Positions 549 through 52,791 of a stretch of DNA of 64,000 bases are shown here, piece after piece. The notes beneath the pieces were generated by a model that was given only the letters and a program-made list of their open reading frames with translations, made no database searches and was not told where the DNA came from. Each line of letters begins with the position of its first letter. Within the stretch, counting starts at the first letter, position 1. Both the position numbers and the translations under genes were made by a program. Origin of the DNA: Lepidodermella squamata (lineage: Eukaryota; Animalia; Gastrotricha); contig JBLDXI010000028.1 of the NCBI GenBank assembly GCA_047495785.1, positions 248,001 to 312,000 of the forward strand, given 5' to 3'.

Positions 549-1245
549 AATTGAAATCATTCTTCGGCATAAATTGCCCATGACCGAGTATGCGTGACTA
601 CAAGGATGATCTTGTTTCATGAAAAGGACAGATTAATGAATCTAGGATCCGAGCTTGTGATCCGAGTATGGATGCAAACCATTAGGAGTGTCAGATATTC
701 CAGAACAGAATAAAACCTTCCAAGATAACCAAGATACAAGACACGGCAGGCGAAAGGCTCGGCTATGCCCTCGGATTTGTCAATCACACTGATTCTTAGC
801 CAGCTTGAACCAGTTAGCAGTTGGCACCACTTCCTGTAATTGAAGATTGTTGTTATACCCCGCTCTTAATCGTATCTTAAAAGAAGGTCGAAGCTAAGTT
901 CGAAAAGGTTGCTGGGCGTTGGCGGAACCGCACGTTACGCGTATTTTGCGTGAATTGTTATTGCTACGGCTCAAGGAATTATTAAATTGCCTCGGGTGGT
1001 ATATGCACATGACACACCGCGTAAAACCGCCCGTTGTTCTCGTAATCGCCTTAACGCCGTGACGAACGAAGAGAGAGCCGGATTAGGCACGCTTCATTTC
1101 ACGCGTGGGTTGTTTTGGCATATCAGAATATGGCACCTGTACACAAATTCAATAGAAAATTTACTCATACTCCTTGTTAAAAACCAATTCCAGAAAAATT
1201 AGTTGATTACATTTTAATTTAGTTTGCGATATAGGCGGAAACCTT

Positions 1246-3220
1246 ATGGTGAAAATGTATTGCCTCGCGCTGGTGATTTGCGCGATCATCGGCCGCGTTC
1301 AGTCATGCATATCATCGATATCGACGTCATCTATCGTTGTGACGACCTCGACTGCTCGTGTCACCCCAGGCAATCAACTGACAACCCCTGCCCCGCCAAC
1401 AGCCATCGCCTCCACTTGCGGCCATTCCACGTAAGCTAGAATCGCCACGCTCGAGTAACTTCTTCGAAGCATGAAATTTAGTTGAATTAGCAAGAGACAT
1501 ATAGAGTTTTGCTAGGGTGGAAAAATTAGTCACGCTTCGCCGAACTGTCACACTTCATTGAATTTGAAATGTTTCGTTTCCAACTTTATTCAGGTACTAT
1601 TATAACACAAATGTCCCCGGTTCTGGGATTGTCGGAGGAGTCAACGCATCTCTGAATCAATACCCGTGGCTCACTCGTCTTGTGATCACCGATGGAAGTG
1701 GCAATACGTACCAATGTAGCGCTTCTATCCTCAGTACAACTTTCCTAATTACAACGGCTCGATGCATTGTGTAAGTTTATCAATTTCACTCAAAATCCCG
1801 TTTTAAATTTTCCCATTTTCTAGATCTGGCACAGCGTAAGTTGAGAAGAAGCTGTCATGCAACAGGTGGTTCTAAATTTCGTTTATTCAGGAGCATTCGA
1901 GCGTATTTCAGCGATTGGGATTCCGCTGTCGCGAATCCTAACGAATTTTCTATTGCGGTTACCAAGGTGATTCAGCACAGTTCGTTCGCGGCCAATTACG
2001 ACTACGACATTGCTCTTCTGCAATTGACAACTGCTTTGAATTTCACCGCTTCGTGGACTGTTCAGCCGATTTGCCTGCCTAAATCGTGCGATGACGGCTG
2101 CAAGGAGGGCACGACGGCTTACATTGCCGGCTGGGGCAACACCTCAGAAAGTGAGTTCCGTGATATTTTCATCCATACAAGGCCGTCACGGTCATGGAAA
2201 CCACCTGATATTTGTCGATATTTGTCGATATTTATCACAAAATGACCAAAATGACCAAATCCAATAAAAAATCATTTCCCCTTGTATCCTATTTCAACAA
2301 TTGAGAAGTGCACACTCCGAGTCCTAAAGTTATGGTTTCAGCTTTAAATTTTCTAAAACTATGGAATTTTCATTTTCCCATCTGCTTGATCTCACTATTT
2401 TAAGCGTAATTTTAACTATCGGTGGACAGTTTAGAAGCTGAAGTAGATCTGATATCAAAATGATTGATTTTTCAGCAATCAAGGCTCCAAAGTCCTAATC
2501 TTGAAAGTTACTCTATGTGCCTGGGTTTTTCCCCGTTCCACAAAAAAAATATAAAGAAACCACAATTGTAAATATGCTTGGTGCCCTCGGGCTGGCAGAA
2601 GAAAAAACTTGAACGGATTATTTAAAAAACAAGAAAATTGAAAATTGCCTGGGGACAAACTGGGCAACCCCAATCGAAAGCCCCAAACCCGGAAACGTTT
2701 TGTGCTAGAAGCTCATTTTTTTTAAATATTATCAAAATCCATTATTAATTTTGAACTCAAACTCGATGCTCACCTGAATTAGCCCCGTCATTTCGAAGAA
2801 GGCGACGTGTTAAGATATTTGAATATTGGTACAAAATATGTTTTTTTACAGCTTCGACAACATTTTCAAGAGTCCTACAAACGGCCTATGTCAAGATTGG
2901 TAACAATGCCGACTGCATAATGCAGTACTGGGGCTCTTCGACACCGATCAGCGACGTTAAGTACTGCGCAGGTGCGTCTTTTGAAAAAATTATTGCTTCA
3001 TTGAGCTAATGATTTTGACATACCAGGTTATCTTGATGGAACGATAGGTCCGTGTTACGGCGATTGGGGCACTCCATTGATGGTTATGGAGGATGGTTTC
3101 TACAAATTATGCGGCATTTACAGTTACTCGAACGGATGCGCTAAACAAAACCAGCACGGTGTCTTTACTCGAGTTTGCGCACTGCTATCTTGGATCAAGT
3201 CCAACGCTGGCATCGCCTAA
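1246..3220 (+). CDS. Secreted trypsin-family (S1A) serine protease homologue, catalytically inactive, copy 1 (~315 aa)
   Basis: Exons 1246-1430, 1594-1770, 1824-1835, 1891-2150, 2852-2971, 3027-3220 splice in frame (948 nt). Signal peptide, Thr/Pro-rich linker, IVGG..YPW, DYDIALL, PICLP, GWG, GVFTRV. The His motif reads TTARC and the Ser motif reads GDWGTP. Confidence 0.92.
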
Positions 3221-3699
3221 ATTTCGATAATCCCCGAAAAATTGATCACTTTAGAAAGAAGGCATCTTGTTAAAATTTAGGTAAATTCTCTGGAATATTT
3301 TTTCGTATGAATAAAAACCTTCGAAAATTCCTTTGATCGATTTTTTATCGGTGTCAATACCTGGTAGTTTAGTCACGCTTGAATGCACACGAATTCTCGT
3401 TACAAAAAGCCTATTGGTATTATTTATATTGGATTACATAAACATTTAGTGGGTGTCAAGACATGATTCAAGGTGGTCGGTGACACGATTCACAAGCACA
3501 CGAACACAGCGTGGGCAGCAGCCAGTCAATTGACCTATAAATGTTACACACGAGCCGCTCACACGCGATTGTTGTTGTAGCTATTGTTTTCACAGCGCGC
3601 ACTTTCACGTCACGCATCCTTCTTCTTACAGGAGAACAATAGTTTTGATTTTTTCTCAACTGTATTTTAAATTTTCACCTCGCTGTGGTTTCGAAAAAA

Positions 3700-5232
3700 A
3701 TGTCTCGTTTATTCATTTTGATTGCGCTGGTTGCGATTTTCGAAATCGGCCGTGTCCAGTCATGCCTATCGTCGACCACCACGTTGGTTGTGACGACTAC
3801 AACGGCTAGAGTTTATCCTGGCAATCAATCAGTGACTCCGGCGCCACCGACGGCCGTCGCAGCTAGTTGCGGCCATTCAACGTTAGTCATCGACACGCAT
3901 CATTAATTTTCGCACATTTAAAAAACTATTTTAGCAAAAAAATTGCAAAATTTTAAATAATTTTTAAACAGGTATTATTACAATTCGAATAACCCTGGCT
4001 CTGGAATAGTTGGTGGTGTTAACGCTACAGTGAACCAGTACCCGTGGCTGGCGCGACTTGTGATCACCGATTCGAACGGAAACACTTATCAATGCAGCGC
4101 CACCATCGTCAGCACCACTTACCTCCTTACGACAGCTCGATGCATTGTGTAAGTCTGTCGAATTTAGAAAAACTAATTTACCTATTTTAGCTGTTTGCAT
4201 TTCTACTTTCAGATCTGGCGTGGCGTAAGTTCAAATCTCATTTTTGTAGAATGGCACTGTCTAATTGTGTCGCCCCTAAAGGTCTATCCGAGCGTATTTT
4301 AGTGATTGGGATTCAACGGTGGCGGATACGAATGAATTTTCGATAGTAGTCAGTAAGGTTGTTCAGCACACCTCGTACTCAGCTACCACCTACGACTACG
4401 ACATTGCCCTTCTGCAATTGACAACTGCACTTAATTTCACGACATCGTGGACGGTTCAGCCGATTTGCCTGCCGAAATCGTGCGATGACGGCTGCAAGGA
4501 GGCCACGACGGCTTACATTGCCGGCTGGGGCAACACCTCAGAGAGTAAGCCATTTTAAAGTAATTAAATTAATCGATAAATTTTTCGAATTTGGAGAAAA
4601 TATTCAATAGTTGTGCGTCATTTCAGCGCGCATTTTTCATCTTTTTACTCCCCTTAATTATCGCTTATTTTCCGAAATCATTTTTTTCATTTTCAAAGTT
4701 GCAACGTCGTTTTCGAGATACCTGCAGACGGCCTACGTTAAAATCGGAAATAATGCTGATTGTGTGCTGCAATATTGGGGATCAACGACGCCTCTCAGCG
4801 ACGTTAAATACTGCGCAGGTAATAAAAAACCCTTCGATCAGTGAGTTTCGAAAATATCGTAAATTCCAGTGATTTAAAGACAGAAATAGAACTGGCTTCC
4901 GGAAAAATTTCGCTTGGAAATATTCTAAATTTAAATGTCTTTCATCAATTTTAAATCTCACAAAATCGACACTACTTAATTTATTTTTGATTATTTTCGA
5001 CGCTATACAATTGTAATTTGTTGTCTGATTTTATTCAGGTTATCTTGATGGAACGATAGGGCCGTGTTATGGCGATTGGGGTTCTCCGTTGATGGTTATG
5101 GAGGACGGTTTCTACAAATTATGCGGCCTTTACAGCTATTCGAATGGATGCGCGAAGCAAAACCAGTACGGTGTCTTCACGCGGGTCTGTTCGTTGCTGT
5201 CTTGGATCAAGTCTAACGCTGGAATCGCCTAA
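3700..5232 (+). CDS. Secreted trypsin-family (S1A) serine protease homologue, catalytically inactive, copy 2 (~315 aa)
   Basis: Exons 3700-3881, 3972-4148, 4213-4224, 4282-4544, 4699-4818, 5039-5232 (948 nt), with the same intron positions as copy 1. Motifs TTARC and GDWGSP. TATAAA at ~3536 and AATAAA at ~5304. Confidence 0.92.
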
Positions 5233-6062
5233 AATAATATATATTTAATAATCTTATTCCGCTAATTTCTCAGCGACCTTAATCTTTTTGATGCGAAAGT
5301 TTTAATAAAAATCAGAAAACTTGCGAATTGTATTCAAACTGAATTTGAGTTCGATTATAAAATTATTGATACACGAGTTGAAATAGAAATGTGAACCATC
5401 TAAAGGGTACGAGCTATTTTTATTTGAACTCGATAGGTTCGTATGCATGGTGTCGGTGTTCAATCCATTTTCCGCCGTAGTCTATTTTTAATATCTTTTT
5501 CTTTATAAACGTACAGCGAGAAACACTCCGCACAGGAAGATGATAATGCGCTGCTTAGCGGAAACGAGTTCGTGGACGATGATTCGCTGTCCGATTGGCA
5601 ACAAAACAAATCGTTTTCGGAGATGATTATTGCTGTTAGGCACCTGCTACCGGTTCAATCTTGTAAAACTCTTGTCCGCTACGCCTTATTTCGAACAAGC
5701 AGTGGAGCCGGATATGTTTCATGTCTAGGGTTCAGCGTTTAAAATTCTCCGACAACTGCCAAGTAACTTTCAACATTAGGATTAGTCGAAAGTGAAGCAA
5801 CAGCAGTGAAGCGGAAAGAAACGTGACCGTCAACGAAAATAGCTCGCCAGCAAAATTTCGACGTGGCTTTAATTATGTCAATTAGTGCACAAGGACGCAT
5901 GTATTTCCGCAGAACATAGCGTCAATTGACACCGATAGAAATCGCAGGGCGGCCAGCGACAACTGAATACGAGCCTCGTCTGTGAAATGGCGCTTTCTAA
6001 TTTCAATTTATACACAGGGTGCATCTTAAAGGACTTTAATAATAAAAGTAGAGAATAATGAA

Positions 6063-6066
<4 letters not shown>

Positions 6067-6106
<40 letters not shown>
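6067..6106. repeat. (TTA)n microsatellite
   Basis: About 13 perfect TTA units. Confidence 0.9.
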
Positions 6107-6111
<5 letters not shown>

Positions 6112-6741
6112 TATGCGATGATTTGATTGCTTTTTCATAAGAGCGCAATTTGATGATGATAAAGGGCGTCGCGCGCTGGGATCACTTGTCATCAATCATT
6201 TTGTCCTCATTATCGCTAGGCGAAAATTTTTAATCTCCGCGCCTCTTTTATTATTATTGATATTATATATTATAATAATAAATCTGATGATTATGATATC
6301 ATCATTCAGCGCATTAGCGACTCGCAACTTTTATGATGAGTGCGCGCGCGCAATAAAAGGCGCGCAATAATATTATAAATTTGCGCGCAATAATTATTAT
6401 CAAACGTCTCGCCCAATTGCGCGCGCGAGCGAGCGGTGCGCGCTCTGGTGTTAAACTTCCGCCTCACATTTGATTTGATATTGAGCGCCTATTAGCCGCG
6501 CGAATATTCAACGCGCGCGCGCGCCCGGGACGCGCCGCCTCATTATTTAAAATATGACAGACAAATCACAAAATGTGCCGCCGCTGAGGCAATTTATCGC
6601 AATAATATCCATATTATTGTCAAATATTAAAATTTAATACCCACAGCGCGCGCCTTTTATCAAAAATCACTTTTCATTTTAAAAATCGTCTAGAAATAAT
6701 AAAGCCATTATTATTCGTATTTTTTTCCCGTCATCGCCATC

Positions 6742-8467
6742 ATGGCCTCGCTCAGCAGTTTCGACGAGGAAGAAACTCCGGCACCTCAGCCGCGGAAACA
6801 CCTACGACCCGACAAGAAGGAGGGAGGGGCAAAACGAGCGAAATTGGACGATATGGAACCGGATATAATCAGCACGACAACCCAGCAACAACAAGCTCAA
6901 TTAATGTTGTTGAACCAAGCCCAGTTATTAGGCCTCCTCGGGGGTCAGAACGACCTGAACCAGCTCCTAATGTCATTGGCCTCAGGTTCCAACGGCGGTT
7001 CCAACATGGCACCAGCCCAAAATAACACGAACAACCAACCCGTGGCGCCATCTCCAGCGCCAAGTAGCCGAGAATCACCGGCTCCGGATGCGGATGGGGG
7101 TGATGATGGAGGCGACGATGAGACTGGGTCAAATGGGGGTGGCAAGAAAACGAGGCGAACAAGGACTTCATTCACGTCGTACCAGCTACATCACCTTGAA
7201 CGGGCCTTCCAGATCAGTCATTATCCGGACGTTTACGTTCGGGAGCAACTGGCTACGGCACTGAAGTTACCCGAGGCTCGCATTCAGGTAAAAAATAGTT
7301 TGAAATTTCCTTTTTCATTTTTTTTATTTTTTTTGTCTTTATTCAGTTTAATTTCAATTTTTAAATCAAACTCCTCCCCTGAGCAATAATTTTATTTTAC
7401 ACCTAATCATTTAGGAATTTGAAATTGATTTAGTGCAGGAAATTGCTCGAATTAAGATGATCACGTATTTTCGTGACTCTTGTTATAAACAACGTGATTG
7501 TCCTCGTGAAGGAGTAATGTCTGAACATAGACATTCCGGTGACGAATTGTAAAAAGTTTCCTGAGTGACGATTCGTTATAAAAGTTTTGACCTAACAGAA
7601 TTGACTCATTACTGCCAAACTTCCGTTAACAGGCTTACCTGGGAAATTATATTCAAGTATCGATTTTTTGCGCTTTCTCAATTTGGACGATTTTCGCTTT
7701 TTGAATCAGATATTTTGAAAACAAAATTGAATAAAATTCAAATTATTTGCATTTGTTATTTTTTAATGAAAAAATACATTTAAATTTTTCAAACATTACT
7801 TCATTCAAATTTTTGAAATTAGGTATGGTTCCAAAATCGCAGAGCAAAATGGCGTCGATCGGAACGATTTGTTGTACCAAGCGGCCCAGCCGCGGCCGCT
7901 GCTGCCGCCCACGTGCTCATGGCAGCTCGGGCGCCGTTCCTATTCGCGAATGGCATGCCTCCAGGGCTCATGTCATCCAATCAGCAATCAGCCGGCGCCA
8001 TCAACGACATGAACCAACGCGCCCTCGCCGCAGCTATCGCCTCAACGCAGGCCGCCAAGGCCCAGGACGCAACGAACCAGAACGACTTCATGGCCGGGTT
8101 GGTCAGCCAGCTATTCGGCGGTACCAACTCGGTACCAGCGGCTCCTACTCCGCCGGATTCAAACGCAGTCTTAGCCCAGTTGCTGAAAGCGAACCTCGGC
8201 ATTGAAACACCTGAGGCTAATACGCCGAATTTGACGAATTCAACGAAACCCGACGCCGCAGCTATGGCGGCAGATATTGGCGCCGTGCTAGCCCAAGCGG
8301 CCGCCGCGGCTGGACTGACGCCGCTTGATTACAAGGTTCTACTTCAAATGCTGGCCGGCAACGGTGGGAATGGTGCCCAGGTAGCGCCGAAATCGCCTCA
8401 TTCGTCGTCGCCCTCGCCGCCCTCGGACGCGCCGTTATCTTCGCCTAATAAGCAAAAGGTGAAATGA
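6742..8467 (+). CDS. Paired-class Q50 homeobox transcription factor, most similar to the Rx/Rax family (~396 aa)
   Basis: Exons 6742-7287 and 7823-8467. Homeodomain [47 protein letters not shown]|[14 protein letters not shown], with the PRD-class intron between Q and V. YQLH.LERAF..SHYPDVY and LPE are Rx-like. Confidence 0.85.
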
Positions 8468-9012
8468 TCCGCGATTCGTGAGACCTAATTTTTTATTAAA
8501 TTATTATTTCGATATTATTCGAGCAGAGATGAAAACTGTTTGCATTTTGTAAAAAAAAATTCGCAAAAATTGAAATGATTTGAATTTTTATTATTTCATG
8601 CAAACTATTTTTCATCTCTGCGAAATTTTTGTTGAAATTGATATTAAAATATATGAAAATCAAAAGTTCAAGTCTATTGTAACTATCATCATAATTTTCA
8701 TTGTGATCTCCACGTATTATATCTGAATTCTATCTCTCTCTCGCTCTGAATATTCATATACCAGCTATTTTATGTCTCGTGCCGCAATTGTTACCGCGAT
8801 TTAACCTGTGCGTAATGATGAACTAATAAAAATCGAAATAAAAGCACGGTTACCGATTCGTTATCATTCTGAAACGTGAAGTAAGTCATCAAGTCCGGCG
8901 GATGTTGCAAATATCACCGCGGGTCGCGTGTCTTGTGCGTGCGCGGCATAGCGTTGCGTGCCACGTATGTTCTATAGGTATACCACACACATCAGTTCGA
9001 GCTCGGACGAAG

Positions 9013-12000
9013 ATGCACAGAGAAGTTTTCAATATCATGCCGATGTTGATGTTCAACACTCTCGTAGTATCAAGTTTTTGGCTGATTTTGGCTCTGATTC
9101 TCGGAAACGTGAAATGCGACCCACTTATCGCTGCGTCGGTGGTTGTTTCCGACGAAGGCTATATTACCGCTGCGTCAGGAGATGCGGAACAGGCGGAAAT
9201 GGTGCGTGGAGGCATTGAAGAAGTTGGACGCGAATCGAGCAATCCGACACCTATCGCAGATGCAATTCCCGTCCTTGACGACGAGATCGGCAGTTCTAGC
9301 GACACTGTCTTGCACTTGTGCGAGTTCAACAGGTACACAAAACAATAAATGAAAATATTAACAAAAATTCCAGTGGAGTTCCATTTTAATTGTTAAATGC
9401 TGAAAAAATTGGTAAAATATTTAATCAGCATATTGTTGCAATTTCAGAACCACATGTGGTTGGATGCCTCAAAGCAGTGGCGACGAGGAGCGACTATTTT
9501 TTCGAAGTCCCGAGGACCCGCCGCCGGTCTTCGACGAAACAACTAATCTTAAAGAAGGCCCAGATCAATGTATGAGCTGCTCGGCATTATTTCAAGCTAT
9601 CAAATTAAAAAATTGAAAGAAGCTTCAATTTGAAATGTTTTAATGCTTAATTTTAATTTGAAATGTTTATTTTTTTTCTTTCATAATTCAACACCCTTGA
9701 CTGATTTTACAGGGCGTGATTATGCTTTCGTGAATGGAACCGGATTTTTTACGCTAACTTCGCCTGAGCTCTACCTAATCAGCGATATTATTGACTTGAA
9801 CCGAGACGAAAATGCTGGGTCACATCGCGGCCACCCGCATAGCCGAAATGCGGACGCATTTTGCGCATCATTCGCCACGCAAACGTCACACTGGACGCGG
9901 GCTGGTCTCTTCGTGATGACGCCGTCGCCCGCAAATGGGTCGTCGCTGAGTCTTAACGTGACAAATGACCAGATGCGGCTGGTTTGGAACGTCGATGCGT
10001 CGCCTGATTATTCGTGGACGACGTATCACGTCACGGTTCATTTACGCGAGCAATACATCAGCGATGCGTCCTGGCCGGGTAAACGGGTGTTGAAGTGTCA
10101 GTTGAAATTTGCGGTCGCGAAATCTGAGTCGGAAAATCACGCTGAAGGCGAAAAACCGCCGCCAGGGGTCTATTTCGGCCTGGGTTTCGTGAAACTGCAG
10201 CGAGGAGGCTGTGAGCAGGAGGTAATAACTTACGAGATGCAGAGTGTGAAGAAGCGAATTGAAGAACCTGCCCAACCTGGAACCGATAACTGGGGCGAGG
10301 CTCGAATGACAGTCAACTCAGATTCAGCCATCTGGCCAGGTGGTATCGTTCCTTACGAGTTCGCAATAGGATTTTTCAGTGAGTTCTTCTGTTTTCAAAT
10401 TCATTTTCTTAATTTAGGAAAATTATTTCAACTTAATTATCCGATCTTTTCCTGTTTTTTCTCATCACAGATAGTACTCATAAAAATATGATTCGAGCAG
10501 CGATGTTGGACATAGCTAACCGGTCCTGTATTCGATTCGTCCCGCATTTCCAATCCTCGGCGTATCTAGAAATTCTAGGTGAGAATCTCGGCTGCTTCGC
10601 CAATGTTGGCTACACTGGTGGCTACTCGTATGTCAACTTGGATCCAGCCTCTTGTTTCGATATGCGAACTATTCGACATGAATTACTGGTAAGTTGAACC
10701 TCGGAATCCCAGTTTTCAAAGATTTCAAAACCTCTAAAGCTAGGAAAAAATTCTGAAGCTCCAATGAATATGTTCAAAAGCTTCCCCAACCTTCGGAAAT
10801 TCTAACAAAAAGGTTGGAATTGAATTCGGCAATCTTCTGAAATGTCCAAGGCATCTAGGTAGCCAAAAGAATGCAATTGATAATATCACAAAGTCTGCTT
10901 TAGGAATCTTTTGCCGGATCTTACGCTTTTAACATAAAACCTGCTTCAAAAGATTTTTATTTTCAGCATGTCGTAGGGTTCTATCACGAGCATCAGCGTC
11001 CCGATCGTGACAAGTACATCGACATAATATGGGAGAACGTTCGCGAGTCGACGTACACTCAATTCGGCATTTACTCTGCCGAAGAGGTCGAATTGTACAG
11101 CCTACCCTATGACTACGAATCGGTCATGCATTACGGGACGAAAACCTTTTCGAAGAACGGTCTGCAGACAATTCGTGCCAAGAATCCTTGGGCAACTATA
11201 GGGTCCATACAGACTTATTCGTTGCTGGACACAAGGCGGATGAGACTTTTGTACCATTGTGACAACCTAGGTTAGCTAAAATTCAATTCACAGGGTTCTT
11301 TTCTATTTAGCTTGATTGTTTTGCAGAAACATCGGCTATTTGGGGTGGATTCTGCACTGCGGATATTGGCGACTTCAAATGCCGCCGTTACACCCCATGC
11401 GAAATCGGAACCTACGTCTGCCCATCGCCCTTAGTCTATGATTCGACCACTCGAAAATGCAAAGCCGGACGGGCTCTTGGCGAGACATGCGCCTCTAGTA
11501 GCGACACGTGCTCAGCAACTAATTCACAATGCGATTCGACAACGAAAACTTGCGTCTGCTCGAGTGGCTATTATAAAGGGCCACGGAATGATTGTATAAT
11601 TTCGGTGGCAACCCGGCGACTCGGCCAGTCATGCGCTAATGTGCTTGAATGCACCTACGAGCTCATCTGTGACTCAGCCACAAAGGTAGTTTTTTCTTCA
11701 ACGCATTTTGCAATATCTGAATGCTTATTTTAGGTATGCAGATGTCCTGTCTCAATGATTCCAGAGGGCGACTACGGCTGTGTTAACAGTAAGTTATTTC
11801 GAGTCGAATTTGCACAGCTTATTTCGATTTAACTTATAGAACAATTTGGGTCACCCTGCACAACGAATCGGGAATGTAGTCAAGCGGTACCGGCAGCTTG
11901 GTGCATCGGTGGAGTTTGCGCTTGCACCAGTCTCTTCGAAGCGGTTAGTTATAATTAGAAATCATGTTATCAGTCTTTACTACCACGCCCCCACTGTAGA

Positions 12001-12382
12001 CTACCTATTACGACGAAAATGGTGCTCTGCAACAAGCTTGTGCTCAGAAAAACTGTACGTATGAATTTATGCAGCGCTTGTGCATGGATTTATGCTGATT
12101 TCCTTGTGTTTAGCTCCAAGGTCACTACTGGGAGAATCATGTGACATAACGAATGGAAACCTATGCGTCACAGGAGCAATTTGCCGGTCTTGCCCGAATT
12201 CTATTAACGATATATGCACCGCGCCGACTGACTTCGCCTTGCTTTGGGCTTCGTTTCCCGATAAACCGCCAGATTTCTACGTTATTGCCGGTGCAAAGCG
12301 ATCAAACGTTTACTGCCCAAAGTCCTTATTAAGCATCATTGTAATTTCATTAATGTATCAGCAAGCTCACTCACTGTCTTGA
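9013..12382 (+). CDS. Secreted astacin (M12A) zinc metalloprotease with N-terminal MAM-like domain and C-terminal Cys-rich EB-like repeats (~823 aa; start codon uncertain)
   Basis: Ten in-frame exons: 9013-9332, 9448-9569, 9713-10378, 10471-10688, 10967-11270, 11327-11685, 11734-11788, 11840-11943, 12000-12054, 12114-12382. HELL|HVVGFYHEHQRPDRD zinc motif, YDYESVMHY Met-turn, WPGGIVPY, CEFNRTTCGW (MAM-type start) and LGxxC..C repeats. AATAAA at 12388. Confidence 0.9.
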
Positions 12383-12482
12383 TATCAAATAAATGTGTTC
12401 GATTTTTGCTTGAATAATGCTCCGCTTCAATCAAGGGGCACATCGCTTTGCAGCAAGTGCAGGGAAGTTATAACAATTAGGC

Positions 12483-15400
12483 CTAAGGGTTGAATTCCTC
12501 GCGTTTGACCACAGTTTGCTCGAGGCGGTTTGCTAACTGCTCTTCCATTTGTAAATCGACGGATTGACTATCGATTGAAAGTGATGATATTGTTTTGCTC
12601 ATCTCATCGTCGTTCATGTTAAAGTAATCGGCTGAAAGATGTACGTGGGCCATTTCCTTCCAAACAATTGCTTTACCACAGCCAAATCCTTTTTCTTTCA
12701 AATAAAGGTGAACATTGAGCTTGCCGAGAGAAGATGATGCTCGTTGATATAAATTAATAGAGCGCATTTGGATGCCCCGTGAGAACCATGCAACCCAACT
12801 TTCAAGATGGGTCTTAGCGGATGCGGCCGCGCTGCTAAATCGCGACGCGGCCATTCCATTGGAACGCATATTAGTCGGCACCATGATATCGATAAGTTCT
12901 GCTGGATCAAGTGGAACCGAGAAAAGTCTCGCGACTATGCCATCTACAGAAAAACGAACCGTACTTTTGTATTTACGCTCATTCACAATTTGTATAGCCT
13001 TTGCCGAAATCAGCCTATCCAGAAAATTCAACCATGAACCATAAACGGGGTTCTTCATAAAAATGTTAGAAAGCTGGAGCCATAGCGTTGCAACATCAGG
13101 CGTTGGTGGTGAGGTGTTTTTCGGATCGTGAACCAAAAATTCAAATATGCAGCGTAAATCGTCGACATTGATGCATCCAAGTTGACGCGTGTAGTACTCA
13201 ACTTTCTTCACGCGACTAGGCAGAATTGCGATGCTAGGACTTGATTGTTTCACAAACTCGTAGGCTGTGTCGGTTTTTTTCCAAACCCAGTGGACTTGGT
13301 TGGTTATTGGATCTGGTAACAGTTGACTCAAAGGCATGGATCCACAGGTAGTAGGACCATCACAACCCTCAACACGAGTCCAAACGAGACCGCAATGCGG
13401 GCATTTCCGGAAAGGAAATACGGCATCGCGACTTCCTACGTGGTAATTTTTAAACTGTTGGCAATGAACAACGTATCTCTCGAGATGGAAGTTGAGCTTT
13501 TCACGGACATGTTTATGCCAGAAGTAATCTTCGAACACATTGCTCTCAAGGGAGTTCTCATCGACAAAGGTGTCGAACATCGCATTGAAATGTTCTCGCA
13601 TCTTTTGAAGCATGGAGAACATAAAGTCTTGCCGCTCAAAAGAATTTTCTATCTGTTCCGCATGAACCATTGCACTGTTTTTGAAAAGCTCGGCCTCGGC
13701 TAAGGTCTGATTGGCCGATCTCAGCACGCCATGTTCGCTTTTTTTCAAGTCAAAGTAGCGGGGAAGGTCGTCAACTGATATCTCAATCATCTTAGCACTG
13801 GTCTGACGACTTCTGTTGTTCAGGAAATCAACGAATTCCTGCTCGAAGTGGCTTGAATTTTTCGAGACGAACAAAACGCTGCCGATTTTAAAGCGCGATA
13901 GGATTTTCGCTCTGACCCTTCCTTCGACTTCAGTTTTGCTTATTCGCAAGTTTTCAGCATGGTCCCAATGAGTAACGACAATCGTAATAATGTCAACGAG
14001 GTCAGCTGCTAGGGGGTCCACAACGAGTTCTACATCGTTGATCATGTTATCTAGTCGGCTGTCGAACTTGCATAAAACAAAAATTTGGGTGACTGGTTGG
14101 TCGGTTAACGCCTTGGCAATGTAGATGGCATGGTCGACTTTATTTTCGACTGATCTATAGCCAGGTGTGTCGGCAAAGTCAAACAGTGGCATTGAGTAAA
14201 CCGTTGTCTCTTTCGTTACACTTTCATCAAAGTCGCTGGTATCAAGCCTCTCGCCAAGTAAACGCTCGGCCAAAGTAGTTTTGCCGCTACCGACCGCCCC
14301 GATGAAGACAACGTAAGGTAGTTCTAAAGTAGATCAAAGTAAAAATTCAAAGCAGCTGGCTAGCGAGTTATTTACTCAGAAACGAATGACCTGCTGCCTG
14401 TGACATTGTTGCTCTTCTATTTGAGTCATGTACCAGTAATTTGGAAATTAAATCGTCTAAATCTTTGCTGTAACCGAAATCAGCTGCTTTGCAAGGGGAA
14501 TCAAACTGCGCATAAGGTTTGAATTGCTAGCGTATTATATGTGACTTCCGTTAATCTTACGTTCATGTTTAGAGTTGCCATTTCGTAGATGCTGGCTCCT
14601 AATGACCAAGCGTCACATTGCGGCGTGTACATGGCCCCAGCCAAAAATTCAGGCGAGGAATATGCGAGCGTTCCAAACCTAGTCGTTGCGGTCACCCTAT
14701 CAATAAAAAGGCTAATCAAATGACAATAACAAACATCATATTGTGCTAACTCGGTTTTCTTTTTGGTCAAACCAAAATCTCCCAACTTTAGAACTCGGCG
14801 ATTGGAGCATAAGAGCATGTTCTAATTACAAACACGGGTTCTACAACTTCACTTGATTTCACTTGATATAGCTTCTTACATCTGGTTTGATGTCGCGGTG
14901 CACCAAGTCGCAACGATGTAAGTAGTCCACGGCGTTAATCATCTGCTTGGCATAAGACTGGATGGTCAGTTCAAGTAAATGCCTGTTGTCGTTGATTGCC
15001 TCGGTGATGACTTGTTTCAGAGAGCCACCATCACAGCGTTCCATAACCATGTAGATTACAGGCCCTCCATTACACTCTTCTGTTCATTTAGAAAAGTTTC
15101 ACTACCGTAACGAGTGGTAACTTTGGGCAAAACGTGTTTTTCGGAGATCAAAAATCAGCCTTTGCTCCTAAATTTCTGGAATTTTCACCAAAGGTGGGGA
15201 CAGTGATTCTTGAATTTACTGAAAATTTTGAAGATTTTGAGAATTTTACCTGACCTTTGGCAAATTAATATGTGTTCGGGTAACTTTGGACAATTAGAGG
15301 GTAATTTTGGACACTCATTTGCATATGCAATTTCATTGCCATTTCATTGTGAATTAGAGGACCCCGCCCTAATTTCGGCCACTTCCTAAATTCGGCCGCT

Positions 15401-18400
15401 GCGTCCTAACTTCGGCCACCGGCCGAAATTTGGACACGAAGTGCTGTGCAGCAGTTTTATTTGCACGCAATTCAAGAACTTTGCATTGTTGGGCCCATCT
15501 GTTTCATGATTTTTCAAGCACGTGATCGCAAAAAAATAATTCTAAATGCGAGCGAGCGGGCTTATGTCACTTCTCGAGTGCTCAGTTACCGCTACTTTGC
15601 AGGTATAATTTACCTGAAACTGGCTCTTTAAAATTTACTGCTTTCACCTCAATAATTACCAGCTAAACCCCACCTTCATTTTGGTATAAAGTACCGTATT
15701 TCTCGAAAATATACGACACACCTGTATATATTCCCGCTCCCTAATACAACCCGACGAAAAAATCGTTTGTTCATATTTAACCCAGGCCTCGAAATTGTAC
15801 CACAGCTATTTTAATTTGGGCGAAGCATGCGTTGGAACAAAAGAATAATAATAATATAATAATGTTTTTATTTATCCTCTTCGGGACTGAGCGTCGTGTA
15901 CCGTTTCCGGTTTTGAAGAGGGCGAAGGCAGGCAAAGAATGATCCTCACCCACCCCCACAGTCGAGGATTCTGCTTTTTGTATAGAATTCGTAATTTTCA
16001 ATCGAGTTAACAACCATGCGCCATTCATCTTTTTCAAAAGAAACCGATTCCGCTAGTTGGACATTATCGTATTAATGACGCATTATCGTAATCAGTGATT
16101 AGCTATCGCTTCAAGGATGGAAAGCCGTGCGCTGCTGGCCGAGAGCTACTGGCTTCGAAGATGGCATCAAACGACACGTTCGATCAAGTCATCAGCCTGG
16201 ATGATTTCAACGATGACGAAAGTGAACCTGACTTTTTTTTTATTGATAATTGATTTTGTTGGTTGATCAAAAAATTGTTAACTTTTTCACTTTTTCACTG
16301 AATCGACAAATAAAACAATCTAAAAACGTCGTCTTAATACGAATTGCTCGCGGCTTTTTGTGATGATTCGCAATTAAACAGCACACCCGTATATATCCCC
16401 ACTCCCTAATACAACCCGAATCAAAAATCATTTGTTCATAAATATAGCCCGCGGTAAATTTTCGAGAAATACGGTATTCTATCTAAAACCGCCCAGGTGA
16501 AGAGATCCAGAGGGCCAATTTTAGGGTTTTTGAGGGTTTGATTCCAAAAATTAGCAGTCAATAGGGGAATTGAATTCGGGAAAACAAAATCAATAATCTC
16601 ATTCTACAGAAGGCAAGGGATTTTTTAGATATTTTTCCAGAATTTTAGAAAGTCAACCGCAGTTAGGCTATTAGGTAGAAAACAAGTTATCAAACTTGTA
16701 CCTGTCAAAACAAGTTTGAGTTTCAGGCATCACGTCGTCAAGGAAAAGCTCACAGGTGAAGCAACAAAGGCGGTTTTTATAGTCAGCTTTTTGAGACAAA
16801 TCTAACGATACCAAACTTATGGTATTAGTGTACCTGGATGAGGTGGCCGAAATTAGGGCACCCCGCTCCCTAATTCCGGCCGGGTGTCTGGGTGACTAAA
16901 AAATTAGCCATAAATCAAGGTAAAATCGTCCGGACTTGCGGAAAGCGGCATTCGATAGCCTAATAACGCCTCTTTAATTCTGCTTATGCCGAATATTTTC
17001 TGAAAATTTACCTGGCTGGCAAAGTCGGAAAAACCTGAAAAGCGGCCGAAATTAGGGCGGGGTCCTCTATCTGTTTTTCATGGTTTTTAATCTTGGGCCA
17101 TATTTCGAAATAAATTATGAACAGATGGCGCATCATCTGTTTCTCGGAAGTCCAATAAAAATACGTTTCTGCGCAGCAGCATACTTAACCCGTCCAAAAG
17201 TGTCCAAAATTACCCCAATTTTCACCTGTTTTTCAGGTAAATGCCCTGCTGAAACGCGTCGATGGATTGTCATTTTTCTTCGATTATAGGGAGAGTAAAG
17301 ATAGGAGAATACTCATGCCAACTTTTATTGAAAACTGTTCGATTTTTAGAAAGATAGAAGGGGGGTCCCAAAACGGCACCCAAAGTCTCACTGCTTGCAA
17401 CTTTTTCTGAAATTCGATTTAAGCTCTAATCGTCTTGATTTTTATTTCAAAGGAAAGCTGAGGAGACGGAGAATTTTATGCGAAAACCCCCATGATTTAA
17501 ACGTTCAACCCTGAAAAGTTGCAAACCTGCAAAGCCGAAAGTGTCCAAAGTTACCCTGTCCACAATCACCACACGTTACGGTATATGAAAATACCATCGC
17601 CGCGTTGCATTCGAAAATCGCCGTGCGTTTATTAGCATAGACATAATTTAGGATAGACTGACTACTCACGAGAAAAGAGCGGAACACCATGGGTCGCAGA
17701 TGTTCAGCTGAATCATCAAAAATGCTCAAAATTTCGGTGGGAAAGTAAACAAAGAAGTTGATTTTTCTTCGATCGATTTCGTTTTATCAGCGCTGGTTCT
17801 CTCAATTTCGTTGATGGAACCAGGAAGAGGATTTTGAGAGGAACAAGATGGTTATTTTTTCGTGAAATTATGATTTTTTTCAAATTGGTCAAAATGCATT
17901 TTTTAGTTTTTGAGCCTACAAATAAAATGGAAAATCGACAAGAAGGAAAGTGAAATTGAATCAATTGTTGACGAATCTAATTGCGGCTGGGCGTGAGCTA
18001 TATTTTGAGCCCAAGCTTGACCTTCAAACCAGAAAAAAGCATGAACCTTGCGCAGGAGTCACAAGTGTGGCCAAGATGGCCAAACCAAAAGTAATGCTAT
18101 TTCCCACCGAAAAACTTAAACAAATTGTCAAAATTCAGCAAAAAATCATTGAAGCTTGGGCTCAGAAGAAAGCTAACGCCAAGCCGCGTTTAGAACCGTC
18201 GGCAACTGCTTCAATTTCCTGTCGATTTTCGATTTTATTCGCAAGCTAAAAAACTCAATAATTAATGTTCACCCATTTAAAAAAATCCAAAATAAAGAAA
18301 AAATCATCATCGTGTTCGTCGTAATATTCTCTTCTAGGTACCATCAACAATCTTCAGAGAACCAGCTCTGATTTCAAAAAATCGATCGAAGAAAAATCAA

Positions 18401-18981
18401 CTTCTTTGTTTACTTTCCCCCTGAAATTTTGAGCATTTTTGATATGATTTTTGATGATTCAGCTGAACATCTGCGACCCATGGTGTTCCGCTCTTTTCTC
18501 GTGAGTAGTCCGTCTATCCTAAATTATGTCTATGGCATAGTCTATATATTCATAATCCCTAATACCTAGCAGCTTTTCTTTCAACCACTATTATTGAAAT
18601 GAGTATAGTATCTAAGCCTTATTAGCCATTTTACTATGTAGACTAGATCTGGGGATTCTGCTTACCCTGGAAATATTCATGCACCATGACGACATTTTTC
18701 GACTGCATGTTTTCCATGTTTTCCGCCTGCGATGAAGAAGTAATAACGGAAAGCCGCGACAACAAATTATATACCTCTCGCTGAGCCATTGTCCACAACT
18801 TTTCGCATAGGCGTTGATTACCCGAGCAATTTCTTAAAATCTTAGCCTTGCTGGTAATTTTCACGGCGTACAAAGTTTCACTCTCGTCATTCTTTTTGGC
18901 AAGGAACACATGGCCGAACCCACCTTGGCCAAGAAGACCCAAATTCAAGTAGGTCTCAGATTTGCGCAAAGACATCGCCAT
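12483..18981 (-). CDS. Fusion protein: NEK-like Ser/Thr kinase + TRAFAC P-loop GTPase + RBR-RING2-like Cys motif (~881 aa)
   Basis: Exons 18981-18775, 18726-18666, 15079-14880, 14821-14751, 14696-14561, 14505-14376, 14323-12483 (2646 nt, in frame). Kinase motifs GQGGFG, YAVK, HRDIKPDN, DFG, SPE, DAWSLG. GTPase motifs GAVGSGKT, SVT, DTPG, THWD. RKCPHCGLVWTRVEGCDGPTTCG follows. Confidence 0.82.
15357..17067. mobile_element. Non-autonomous TA-inserting DNA element B, nested in A
   Basis: TIR GAGGACCCCGCCCTAATTTCGGCC and its reverse complement. The TA duplication is confirmed by the empty site (gaatTAtctgtt) in the 24798-25567 copy. Subterminal TTCGGCC repeats. Confidence 0.9.
15694..16474. mobile_element. 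Tc2/pogo-like MITE C, nested in B
   Basis: TA-CCGTATTTCTCGAAAAT...ATTTTCGAGAAATACGG-TA, with an internal direct repeat CTCCCTAATACAACCCGA near both ends. Confidence 0.85.
17636..18534. mobile_element. Foldback-type element with long (~300 bp) imperfect TIRs
   Basis: CATAGACATAATTTAGGATAGAC...GTCTATCCTAAATTATGTCTATG. The outer ~140 bp are a near-perfect inverted repeat. TSD not resolved. Confidence 0.85.
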
Positions 18982-19777
18982 TGGACAGATATAACATCAA
19001 TGCCCTGCTTTGAGGATTGCGCAGGTATATAAAAGTTCAATAATATAATGATTCAACTTTCATTTCCAGTTGCAAGTTGCAAGTCAGCGGTCGTTATTTA
19101 AGATAAAATGGAACTGATAAAATGCCTCCTAGAGATGGGTGGGTCTCTCTATCTCTCACAAGGCTACCTATATCCAAATCATGATAAGTGCAAAGTCTTC
19201 TGTGGAATTTTGTTTTATTTTTTGGGAAAAGCAGTGACGATAAACGTTTTCGCGTCATCCGCACTACACTGCATTAAAATATTATCTAACTTAGTATAAA
19301 CAGCGCGTGTGACAGGAATGCGCCACGATGAAACCTTAGGAAACAAAGTAAATATTTTTTCAATTGTTACTACTTTATTCAATCCATTTTATAAAATTAA
19401 AATACAATTTATAACGGACAGCTAACTATTCTAATAAAGCTGAAAACAACTGAGTGGCACAAAAAGACAAATATACTCGAAAGAGGTTTCAACGAAAAAA
19501 TATACCTGATTTACACAAAAATTATAAGCGATTTTCACGCAAAAATTATCGGCTTCGAAGATGATCACCCAAGTTTAATAGAGATTTTCTGAGTAGGACA
19601 AGTTAACATGACATGATTCATTCAACATCAAGAAAATAAGCGATTTATAGAGTTTGGGGAAATAGCCGCCAACTTTCAATCATTTTTGCACACGGGCGTT
19701 AAAATTTAACGAGAAGTCATTCATACAGTCGAGGTTATAAGTTCGGTTTTTGAAACTTGTTTGAAATCCGGAACCGC

Positions 19778-39270: not shown

Positions 39271-40353
39271 CTAGACACAAAGCTCTCGAGGCGGAGGTTT
39301 GACCGGAACAGAATCTAGCCTATCAAAACTGTCCGCTTTGAATGCATCGATCTCACTTTGAGTCAGCTCTTGTAAAGACGAATAAACGCCCGGCGCAGAC
39401 GATGCTGCACTGTTATCCTGTGTTACTGTTGTTGCGACTTCTTTGCCAAACAGAGTTTTCGGCTGTGCTGGAGCTGCTGCTGGTGCGGGTTGGGATGGAA
39501 CTGGCGCTTGGAATAATGCAGATTGGCCAAAAGCAGGCTGTGGCTGCTGAGCTGGTTGTGGGGCTGGGACAAATGCAGGCATAGCTGGCTGTTGAGGCTG
39601 ACCGAAACCTGTAAATGCATTCGTTTGAGGGGCTGGAGGTTGGAAATTGAACTGCGAAGGCTGAGTAGCCACAGTTGGTTGCTGTACTGCAGGGGTAAAC
39701 GCTGCTTGACCAAACATGCTAGTTTGTTGATTGGTTGCTGGAGGAGCGAACGAAAATGTCGGAGTCTGCTGGGCAGGCTGCGGTTGCGGCTGTTGTTGTT
39801 GCTGCTGCTGCTGCTGGCCAAAACCAAAAATCCCACTACTGCTGTTTGCGGTCGTCGATCCTCCGAAAATCGACTTGGCAGCTTGGCCCATTCCCTTGGC
39901 TTGGTGGATGAATTCGCGAAGATTAGCACGAAAATTCATATCAGGATTCATCAACACAGCCTTCTGCTGCCTTGCTTGCTGCAATAGCCCAGTCAATTTT
40001 GCTACGTATTGGTCGAATGTGTTGTTCGCCCTCGCTTGATACGCTTCCCATCGAATTTCTTCAAAGCTGTAGTTTTCAAGCCCAGGCAGAATTGGAGCGG
40101 CATTAGCAAAAGAGAACACTGATAACGGCCACATTTTGCTTGTTTCCCACGTGTGAATTTCTGTCGAGATGCCTTTCAGAATTTCATCGTCAGACATCAT
40201 CCGCCAGTCTGTTACTTGCTTCTTAGCGCCTTGCTGTTGCTGTGGTGCACCGGCTGGTTTGACCGGGCCGCCGGCAGAGGCAGCGTCGTGTCTGTTCCAG
40301 CATGAATTTCCGAATCTGCAATTGCCTTGAAGCCAGTATTGACATACAGACAT
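39271..40353 (-). CDS. NUP42: FG nucleoporin NUP42 (NUPL2/hCG1), single coding exon
   Basis: N-terminal CCCH finger CQYWLQGNCRFGNSCWNRH, WPLS, SFEEIRWEAY, FG-rich region, and C-terminal Gle1-binding motif FKADSF..VPVKPPPREL. Confidence 0.9.
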   Translation of the reverse strand: MSVCQYWLQGNCRFGNSCWNRHDAASAGGPVKPAGAPQQQQGAKKQVTDWRMMSDDEILKGISTEIHTWETSKMWPLSVFSFANAAPILPGLENYSFEEIRWEAYQARANNTFDQYVAKLTGLLQQARQQKAVLMNPDMNFRANLREFIHQAKGMGQAAKSIFGGSTTANSSSGIFGFGQQQQQQQQQPQPQPAQQTPTFSFAPPATNQQTSMFGQAAFTPAVQQPTVATQPSQFNFQPPAPQTNAFTGFGQPQQPAMPAFVPAPQPAQQPQPAFGQSALFQAPVPSQPAPAAAPAQPKTLFGKEVATTVTQDNSAASSAPGVYSSLQELTQSEIDAFKADSFDRLDSVPVKPPPRELCV

Positions 40354-41108
40354 TTTATGCAAAAGCTATCTAGATAATGGATGATCAAGTACGAAACATT
40401 AAAAGATGAACAAACAGAAGTATGTTATAAACCGTAGACAAAAAGGTTCTTTAATACTCTTCGATTAGTAACTGACTCAACATTTCAGTATCACAAGATT
40501 TTGACAATGAAAAATGATGTAAGATGTAAGATGTAAGAATTCAAAGTATTTGACTGCGAACTGCGAACGATGAATTTTTGTGTTGAGGCCAAAATTACAA
40601 TCAACAAAGGACAGCATCGCATGAACATGAATTTACAACAGATCGACACGAAAAACCTGGCACAGCCTCCAGCCTCCAGCCAACACAATATTTTATTTTT
40701 GCTGAAAATCAGGATGTGTTCGGGCGGCCAAGTCGATTTTTTCAAGAAAAAATGCGCGATTTCATTCATTCTTTACTTGGATTTTCTACAAAATATTACA
40801 TAATTTTTTATTATAAATTAACACACAGGAATGCACTAATTTTTCCTCTGCAAAATTTCACTATATAACCGGCCGGACTTGGCTCTCAAGTCAGTTTGCC
40901 GGTTTTTTTCCGCTTGAGAACGTCAGTAACCACGCTATTTCATGCCGGTCGTTGGCAACGCGTTGACAGCGTCCTACCTGTTGCTCGCATCTTTAGCATA
41001 TTTTTGAATAATGTCACCTTATACAGTTTGAACTGTTATCACACCATAGTAGTCTGATTTAACGCGTAATAGTTTCCGATCATTAGCTGAAAGCTGACTG
41101 AATCCAAT
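40354..41108. promoter_or_regulatory. Putative bidirectional promoter between NUP42 and SETD3
   Basis: 755 bp between two divergently oriented start codons; positional inference only. Confidence 0.55.
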
Positions 41109-51600: not shown

Positions 51601-52791
51601 TTTTAGAGCGCTCAAGGCTAACAAAGATACGACCGCTTTTCCTGCATCTTGTTTTTTTCTAAATTATTCATCTTTAAATTTGATTCTTTAAATCAATCAA
51701 AATCAAAATGCTAATTTTTGAGCATTCTTCAAATTATGCTGTGAGCGACTTATAAAAGCCTTGGTAGCTTGGATTTGTCCATTATTATAATCATATCATA
51801 TATCATATCTTCATATCTTATCATTTTTTCTGTATTCTTTTAGATTTTGCTCAAACACGTGGTGTTTTTCACGGAAGCGAATGCGTCGTCGCTGCTAGGC
51901 GCCTCGCTGCAGTGGGAGACACTCGAGCAGGTGTTCGCGTGGCAGCTCTTCTTCGCGCACTCGAACATCGCCGCCACGCGCCTGCTCGGCCTAGTCACTA
52001 AGCTGAAACTGGACAAGCACCACGAGGCCCTCGTGTCGCTGTGCAACCGCCTCGCCCAGCTCCCGCCCAGCCACGACGTCGTGCTAGCCGTGCTGTCGCG
52101 GGCAGCCGCTCCGGCTGAATTCGCCGCCCCGGCCCTGCTCAAATCGTGGGCCGACTCGAGCCCGTCTCAGCTCGTCGAGTCGCTGAACCAGCTGCTCGGA
52201 GGCCCGGGCCAAAATGTGATAACCCGAACGAACCGGGGCGGCAAATTGCAGTCGACAAACAGCGGCAATAGCAGATCGGCTGGGCTGAGCAAGGAGCAGC
52301 TACTCGCGCACCTCGAGCGGTTCAGGGACGTTGTGCAGGACGCGAAATTTCTGCTGCTGCCGCCGGTGCAGCGGCTGCTGTCGACGCTGCACGCGCAGGC
52401 GAGCGAAGCACTGAAAAGCCGATACTCCGATTTGTTCGCGCTCATCGACGACAAAATCGTGGCGGCGTCGGACCGCGAGAACTCGAACGAGTCGTCCGCC
52501 TCCTCCGCCTCCTCCTCGTCCAGCCCCGTCGTCATAGCAATGTCGAATAGCAATAACAACAACCAGTCTCCCCTTTCGGCGGTGTCCTTGCTCGACGGCC
52601 TCGACGGCGTGCCGAGGTTGAGCAACTCGAGCAACCCGGCAGCCGCCGTGCCTGGCCCAGCCGCCTCGAAGCTGCGGCGCGTGCAGAAGCGGTCGCCGTC
52701 GCAGCAGACGGGCGGGCTCGGCCAGGCGGGTGGTCCGCCGGTGCCGCAGCCGGGCAAAATGGCCAAGTTTTCGGCGTCGGATTTCGCCTGA
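42651..52791 (+). CDS. INTS3: Integrator complex subunit 3 / SOSS-A (~1107 aa)
   Basis: Exons 42651-42824, 43504-44226, 47427-48125, 48986-49765, 51844-52791. Motifs IGRDLVRLL, TSRRFL..RITPDLE, RCELIRYICGLIHPS, LAKLALYFDWL, SLQWETLEQVFAWQL. Confidence 0.95.
45063..45200 (+). repeat. Dispersed repeat, second copy at ~59876-60010
   Basis: Shared TCTAACGAG.ATTTCAGG, ACTAGATCTATCGA, TTCAAAAAATTCCTCATGGTT and CCGTACTTTAT. Confidence 0.75.
45285..45910 (-). pseudogene. Two tandem degenerate RING/PHD-like ORF relics antisense within INTS3 intron 2
   Basis: MSCHICAE...CTMLCCGN...FLRFLEFP and MGSCVVCLEE..VRC/(frameshift)NQQFHRHCAETWL...FLRRVGFP; an in-frame stop occurs downstream. Confidence 0.45.
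49847..50274. mobile_element. hAT-type MITE
   Basis: CAGTGT..ACACTG termini, 8-bp TSD CTCTATCC/CTCTATGC (7 of 8 match), and subterminal GACTC motifs. Confidence 0.75.

Follow-up and report, generated by a model that had tools for sequence, protein, structure and literature searches.

Does a row of small kinase exons in the genome of the gastrotrich Lepidodermella squamata continue by splicing into a large GTPase exon, and if so, what kind of protein does the resulting gene make? The question arises from a 64,000-nt stretch of contig JBLDXI010000028.1 (positions 248,001 to 312,000; hereafter the window, in whose own coordinates all positions are given), in which an initial look at the letters and their open reading frames (ORFs), here called the sequence-only reading, had proposed a kinase-GTPase fusion with a C-terminal ubiquitin-effector domain at 12483-18981. 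On the evidence set out below, every feature described by the sequence-only reading lies at its stated position, and the locus is an expressed seven-exon animal gene whose 881-aa product combines a kinase, a GIMAP/AIG1/Toc-like GTPase, a helical domain, and a cysteine (Cys) module. We give a probability of roughly 0.6 to the explanation that we favour for it, in which GTP-driven assembly would control the kinase, likely in defence or stress signalling.

Read exon by exon, the gene comprises seven exons on the minus strand from 18981 to 12483, the last of which (the big exon, 14323-12483) holds everything downstream of the kinase. The exons sum to 2646 nt, enough for 881 codons and the stop codon and thus in exact agreement with the length first proposed for the spliced protein. 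With phases worked out by arithmetic and each of the seven exons translated separately, the phases are compatible throughout and no exon contains an in-frame stop. All six introns are of the GT-AG type and measure, in order, 48, 3586, 58, 54, 55, and 52 nt. Direct reading yields the motif order GQGGFG, AVK, HRDIKPD/N (split between exons 3 and 4), DFG, SPE, LPYVVFIGAVGSGKTT, DTPG, THWD, CPHC-x9-GC-x5-C, and GCGK, and the big exon opens straight at strand beta1 of the GTPase (LPYVVFIGAVGSGKTT), so that the kinase is joined to it without a linker. The features are listed below with the evidence for each, which includes matches to Pfam families, structure prediction with AlphaFold2 (AF2) with its confidence score pLDDT (predicted local distance difference test), and contigs and depths from the public run X1 and from run X2, the latter presumed to be a genomic DNA run and containing all sampled words.

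18775-18981, minus strand: exon 1, with the start codon, the glycine loop GQGGFG (18913-18930), the AVK catalytic Lys (18859-18861), and the start of helix C (sequence).
18727-18774, minus strand: 48-nt in-frame GT-AG intron; the X1 depth fits a spliced and an unspliced form alike.
18666-18726, minus strand: exon 2, with the last part of helix C plus strand beta4, leaving in phase 1 (X1 depth).
15080-18665, minus strand: 3586-nt intron with GT and AG ends, packed with high-copy repeats (X2 depth).
14880-15079, minus strand: exon 3, with the hinge, helices D-E, and the catalytic loop HRDIKPD (14880-14900) (Pkinase match; X1 piece with 0 mismatches).
14751-14821, minus strand: exon 4, with the catalytic-loop Asn and DFG (14771-14779) (sequence; X1 depth 13.3).
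14561-14696, minus strand: exon 5, with the activation loop, SPE (14648-14656), and DxWSLG (Pkinase match; X1 piece 14561-14695).
14376-14505, minus strand: exon 6, with a shortened helix G region, the subdomain XI Arg, and the end of the kinase, leaving in phase 1 (X1 piece).
14324-14375, minus strand: the phase-1 intron of 52 nt whose removal creates the fusion, skipped exactly by an X1 contig and present in an X2 contig.
14368-14370 and 14334-14336, minus strand: stops inside the 52-nt intron, the first being the would-be kinase stop and the second that of the GTPase frame (sequence).
13797-14323, minus strand: G domain, with G1 GAVGSGKT (14277-14300), G3 DTPG (14160-14171), and G4 THWD (13962-13973) (MMR_HSR1 match, AF2, Foldseek).
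13458-13775, minus strand: helical domain formed by three long helices that pack behind the G domain (AF2 helices 183-288, pLDDT >90; kept in all homologues).
13224-13424, minus strand: first part of the Cys module, CPHC-x9-GC-x5-CG (13341-13403) and a beta hairpin (alignment; AF2 short strands, pLDDT ~80-94).
12696-13223, minus strand: insertion of ~176 residues within the Cys module, predicted at low confidence to be helical (alignment and AF2).
12483-12695, minus strand: second part of the Cys module, GCGK-x-I-x-W (12672-12683), with two C-terminal helices and the TAG stop codon (12483-12485) (alignment; pLDDT 88-94).

Whether the kinase and the GTPase are made as one chain turns on the 52-nt intron. 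If it stays in, the kinase frame stops two codons past the donor (..FLSK*), and the GTPase frame, which lacks an ATG ahead of the P-loop, has a stop of its own within the intron; the sequence-only reading had pointed out both of these features of the GTPase frame. A 1786-nt X1 contig with a depth of 30.4 matches the genome with 0 mismatches in the pieces 15079-14880, 14695-14561, 14505-14376, and 14323-13236; it crosses the 52-nt intron and the three introns before it, joining 14376 to 14323, which is the very junction that had been named beforehand as the check on a phase-1 GT-AG splice creating a single-chain fusion. In contrast, the X2 contig is colinear with the genome over 13100-15157, introns included. 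The mean X1 depths per 199-nt bin (22.5, 22.0, 13.3, and 28.9) equal 30.4 multiplied by the model's exonic bases per bin, with the 13.3 of bin 14692-14890 matching 87 exonic nt. Farther upstream, bin 18672-18870 has the depth expected from 125 nt of a 30.4-deep contig, and the X1 contig has 131 further letters upstream of 15079, which fits a run-on into exons 2 and 1. As the bin depths match the exon model, the short exon 14821-14751 is confirmed, and the same depth arithmetic shows intron retention in none of the X1 contigs. The exact splice joins together with the depth match indicate that X1 behaves as RNA and that splicing joins the kinase exons to the GTPase exon.

The stop two codons past the donor could nevertheless be taken to mean that read-through yields the fusion only as a minor or functionless product, that the real product is a stand-alone kinase ending in ..FLSK*, and that the GTPase exon is a decaying acquired gene. 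A paralogue in the window, the stand-alone kinase at 53674-54847, ends at the same place, and rare isoforms are dropped by contigs. However, X1 shows the spliced form only, with zero depth in the intron, and the 613-codon exon is open with all invariant residues of its family and all G motifs intact. Moreover, a GTPase without a start of its own before the P-loop is translatable as a functional GTPase only via the fusion. We therefore consider the read-through explanation unlikely.

At its 3' side the X1 contig ends at 13236 with 30 unaligned letters, at a place without a GT donor, and X1 depth continues to 13100; the contig break may be an allelic bubble. Transcription is thus seen at least down to 13100, and the frame of the ~176-residue insertion is open throughout.

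Turning to the kinase half, Pfam was run on three separate kinase pieces and on the 612-aa product of the big exon. Pkinase (PF00069) matched the piece 14889-15050 with E 7.6e-10 and exon 5 with E 1.2e-7, both above the family cut-off, and the first-exon ORF (18643-18981) with E 2.8e-5, below it. The set of kinase motifs is complete (GQGGFG, the AVK Lys, the helix C Glu, HRDIKPD/N, DFG, SPE, DAWSLG, and the subdomain XI Arg), and the exon translations agree with the initial claim of six kinase exons with intact catalytic motifs. With profile matches on its pieces and all catalytic motifs present, the product of exons 1 to 6 is, judged from its sequence, a complete Ser/Thr kinase belonging to Pkinase. 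It might still be asked whether this domain is a pseudokinase or scaffold, which would make the protein a GIMAP-like membrane scaffold without phosphotransfer. The shortened helix G region would suit such a role, as would the kinase's lack of a place in any known subfamily, with the best single-exon matches in the PDB scattered over CDPK, STK33, CHK2, PKR, ULK1, PAK, NEK7, and MEK1. The presence of the glycine loop, the VAIK Lys, the helix C Glu, HRD, the catalytic Asn, DFG, SPE, and the subdomain XI Arg, however, makes us doubt that catalysis has been lost.

The paralogue of the kinase half lies on the plus strand of the window at 53674-54847. It is a stand-alone Ser/Thr kinase with 45-59% identity over the matched exons and with introns at codon positions identical to those of the fusion gene. 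At AQLE/AEMM, the position of the 48-nt intron in the fusion gene, it has an obligatory intron containing stops, and its own stop falls just past the kinase domain (..EHPYFNS*), followed by a likely AATAAA signal. This identity, the shared intron positions, and the separate stop argue that the kinase half derives from a local stand-alone kinase family, of which the gene at 53674-54847 looks like the ancestral unfused form.

The GTPase was recognized by Pfam as MMR_HSR1 (E 3.6e-6 on the big exon; score 27.5 bits, cut-off 21.9). AF2 predicts the G domain and the three-helix domain with pLDDT >90, the Cys module acceptably, and residues 367-542 poorly. Foldseek against the PDB placed mostly GIMAP7, GIMAP2, GIMAP1, and Toc34 among its top 13 matches (E 1.6e-8 to 5e-6), with GIMAP7 (3zjc, E 1.6e-8) as the best fold match of the G domain. 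In the ESM Atlas, the query falls among ciliate clusters, of which one has 64 members and one 366, and its structural neighbours after these (rows 4-10) are AIG1/GIMAP clusters throughout; a GIMAP-type fold with a helical extension is thus found by Foldseek and the ESM Atlas alike. A profile of the protein's own family matched EngA/Der best (1.5e-17), followed by GIMAP4 (3.3e-9) and then by TrmE, Era, Toc, and septins. For the G domain alone, the phmmer signal against the PDB was too weak for an alignment to GIMAPs. Its P-loop has a Gly where K+-dependent GTPases have an Asn. Altogether, the predicted structure and these matches suggest a G domain that is GIMAP/AIG1/Toc-like by fold and lies within the TrmE-Era-EngA-septin-like group of TRAFAC GTPases, in keeping with the AIG1/GIMAP/septin-related assignment first made from its motifs.

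Among known structures, the GIMAP/AIG1 proteins and Toc34 come nearest in fold to the G domain together with part of its helical extension, and they also share with it the GxxGxGK[ST] P-loop and a G4 of the T-H-x-D type. In contrast to the window protein, GIMAPs have neither a cysteine module nor a kinase, and by profile the window protein stands closer to EngA/Der, its Pfam AIG1 score being far under threshold; we therefore do not count it as a bona fide AIG1 member.

Beyond the kinase, the protein has many relatives. An exhaustive search with the 612-aa exon product, from which our counts come (a word-indexed protein search gave three matches only), retrieved 402 cluster representatives at E <=0.001 among 1.84 billion, and 150 of these reach 1e-10. 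The best homologue has E 3.4e-60 (phmmer, residues 1-360), with 35-37% identity, and most members are ~450 aa long. Those with names come from Tetrahymena, Paramecium, Physarum, and Pelomyxa and are annotated as "G domain-containing" or as hypothetical proteins. In an alignment of 43 sequences, with columns labelled by the window protein's own residues, G8, G13, K14, T36, D51-T-P-G54, H64, R89, D120, and F190 are invariant or nearly so (G8, G13, K14, D51, and P53 fully), as are C307, C310, W314, G319-C320, G322, T324, C326-G327, and C548-G549 in the Cys part. The window protein has all of these columns, and the GTPase-helical-Cys part accordingly belongs, by sequence comparison, to an unnamed family common in ciliates and Amoebozoa. 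The proposal that the protein is lineage-specific thus holds for the kinase join but fails for this part, which is widespread in protists.

Protist members such as Tetrahymena malaccensis ABPG74_017062 and Paramecium tetraurelia GSPATT00037622001 (A0CEG8) share with the window protein G1, the switch-I Thr, DTPG, T-H/K-x-D, the helical domain, and the cysteine motifs CPxCG-x3-W-x5-GC-x-G-x-T-x-CG and GCGK-x-I-x-W. In contrast, they have their own start and, in those checked, no kinase, whereas the window protein has a kinase in front and the 176-residue insertion. Pfam found a kinase domain in 0 of the 33 representatives checked, long and N-extended ones included, and the two nearest homologous loci retrieved with their DNA (L001 and L002) each consist of one exon that has a start of its own and is not preceded by a kinase; tblastn with the kinase exon pieces gave no match in either. 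No close relative was found among metagenome contigs of the JGI with a single-protein query. The nearest stand-alone homologue, L001 9090-11170 on an ENA contig with a GC content of 32.5%, adjoins a non-LTR retrotransposon with RVT_1 and endonuclease domains.

Some family members are joined to other domains per Pfam: a Crinkler N-terminal header domain in P0122, an NAD:arginine ADP-ribosyltransferase (ART) domain in P0036 of Pelomyxa schiedti, and a CBM20 starch-binding domain in P0008. Others have tandem G domains. The family thus seems to take part in domain shuffling that involves conflict or effector domains. A further arrangement is that of P0011 (ENA metagenome, 812 aa), with three near-identical tandem units of helical domain and Cys module behind one truncated G domain; the unit may truly have been triplicated within the gene, or the assembly may be at fault. 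A weak match of P0011 to MZB (PF09369) was summed over these repeats and given no weight.

What the Cys module does bears on the last part of the original proposal, an Rcat-like ubiquitin effector. The CPHC..GC..C motif on which it was built is real and conserved: across the 43 sequences, C307, C310, and C320 are invariant, and conservation reaches at least 90% at W314, G319, C326, and G327 and likewise at C548 and G549 (in GCGK-x-I-x-W, after the beta hairpin). In the window protein the module is split by the insertion (residues 367-542, ~176), which is present in no homologue of this alignment. Five Cys are conserved across the family, whereas one zinc needs four. On this basis, one could see in the module a minimal catalytic domain of the Rcat type whose active-site Cys would be C320, making the protein a kinase-GTPase-ubiquitin (or ubiquitin-like protein) ligase. 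We take the arrangement C-x2-C-x9-(G)C-x5-C plus a distal Cys to resemble the first zinc site and catalytic Cys of RING2 in RING-between-RING (RBR) ligases such as Parkin and HOIP. In addition, the weak, non-significant Foldseek rows include the RBR chains ARIH2, RNF216, and HHARI, and an IBR-containing giant-virus cluster was weakly matched by language-model features (score 0.76).

Set against this spacing are the searches themselves. IBR (PF01485) matched only 1 of 40 family modules, with E 0.096, and no Pfam family was common to more than seven of the 40. With the isolated module, folded alone with its insertion included, the best Foldseek match had E 0.64 and RBR chains appeared at E 3.5-5.2 only. 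No Pfam match to RING or IBR was found in the 612-aa exon product, which thus lacks the RING1-IBR-Rcat triad of RBR ligases; the second zinc site is missing as well. The language-model neighbours of the module scored 0.76-0.81, values that shuffled sequences also reach, and the VIA-wide structure search was swamped by the insertion's low-confidence helices and is uninformative on the zinc part. The likeness to Rcat (RING2) therefore comes down to the spacing C-x2-C-x9-C-x5-C, in a protein without a significant profile or fold match to RBR ligases, and the ubiquitin-effector label is not supported. We find the Rcat-like ligase improbable, and we would give slightly less credence still to its extension, in which the module is an unrecognised minimal transthiolating ligase, the protist family a set of GTP-regulated E3s, and the animal protein a three-enzyme defence chain. 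Presumably, the module is instead a family-specific zinc-ribbon-like domain binding one zinc.

How might such a protein work? GIMAPs, septins, and Toc GTPases act as nucleotide-dependent dimers or oligomers formed through their G domains. By analogy with these, GTP binding would lead to dimerisation or oligomerisation of the window protein via its G domains. Since the kinase is fixed without a linker to strand beta1, such GTP-driven assembly would be expected to juxtapose the rigidly attached kinase domains, which could then be activated in trans. GTP hydrolysis would reset the kinase assembly, and the helical domain with the zinc module would serve as the target- or membrane-binding end. Defence or stress signalling is proposed as the likely setting because the family combines with conflict-type domains.

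Several points weigh against this picture. We infer the protein's GTP binding, its dimerisation, and its kinase activity, and with them the GTP gating put forward in the sequence-only reading; the defence role is guilt by association. The helix G region of the kinase is shorter than usual, though it is the sole shortened stretch. Pfam AIG1 (PF04548) reaches only 12.4 bits on the big exon against a cut-off of 27 (E 0.095), and 22-27 bits in a few homologues, so GIMAP-like behaviour leans on similarity of fold. With regard to the transcript, X1 contigs do not cover the 5' end with the ATG and the glycine loop (X1 depth is 0 over 18871-19050, placing the first ~110 nt of the coding sequence outside transcript cover), and the contigs are no proof of a single molecule running from ATG to stop.

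Two comparisons place the architecture among known systems. The ROCO proteins (LRRK1/2 and DAPK1) likewise carry a GTPase and a Ser/Thr kinase on one chain and provide the concept of a kinase regulated by a G domain. The window protein differs from them in having no Roc, COR, or repeats and a septin/GIMAP-like G domain directly C-terminal to the kinase. The absence of a Roc-COR tandem, already suspected from the sequence, is borne out by Pfam, which gives Roc E 0.18 over the P-loop only (residues 4-29) and no COR among matches up to E 1, the region past the G domain being the three-helix domain. The second comparison is with the AIG genes of Biomphalaria glabrata with N-terminal Pkinase domains that were listed by Lu et al. 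(2020, PMC7053062), who state that genes of this kind occur in salmon and fungi too. Like the window protein, these have a kinase at the N-terminus followed by an AIG1-like GTPase of the immune type, and they do so in an invertebrate whose GTPases have expanded (PMC7053062). They are predicted genes with bona fide AIG1 domains and no reported zinc module, and the likeness noted here is one of architecture (PMC7053062). With such Pkinase+AIG1 models already listed, a kinase joined to an AIG1-type GTPase is not unheard of; the gene is not a new kind of system, and calling its architecture undescribed was too strong (PMC7053062). In the literature, we found no description of the Cys-module family, its function, or its kinase fusion.

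The gene is thus a transcript-supported addition to a recurring theme in which immune-type dimerising GTPases are wired directly to an effector enzyme. The family of its G domain, so far unstudied, numbers hundreds of proteins in ciliates and Amoebozoa, and the linker-free kinase offers a ready read-out of the GTPase: measuring phosphorylation against nucleotide state could make the mechanism of the family testable.

The gene also illustrates a route to fusion, in which an intron-less protist-like gene behind a local kinase is caught by a splice donor. The intron-less GTPase half resembles protist genes, and its horizontal acquisition is a plausible conjecture. In this scenario, an intron-less GTPase gene would have landed just behind a member of the local stand-alone kinase family, where a donor two codons before the kinase stop would splice the GTPase in frame onto its P-loop strand. 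The neighbours in the window are a homeodomain exon (6742-7389, plus strand, E 1.1e-13), a CCCH zinc-finger ORF (39271-40362, minus strand), and the C-terminal HEAT region of INTS3 (51847-52791, plus strand, E 1.1e-37). That these flanking genes are ordinary animal ones argues against contamination and for a normal chromosomal context.

Lastly, the 3.6-kb intron between exons 2 and 3 (15080-18665) has a depth of ~600-16,000 in the X2 DNA run, versus ~100 in its flanks, and several short GC-rich motifs (ggccgaaattagggc...) are repeated within it, which suggests elements resembling miniature inverted-repeat transposable elements (MITEs).

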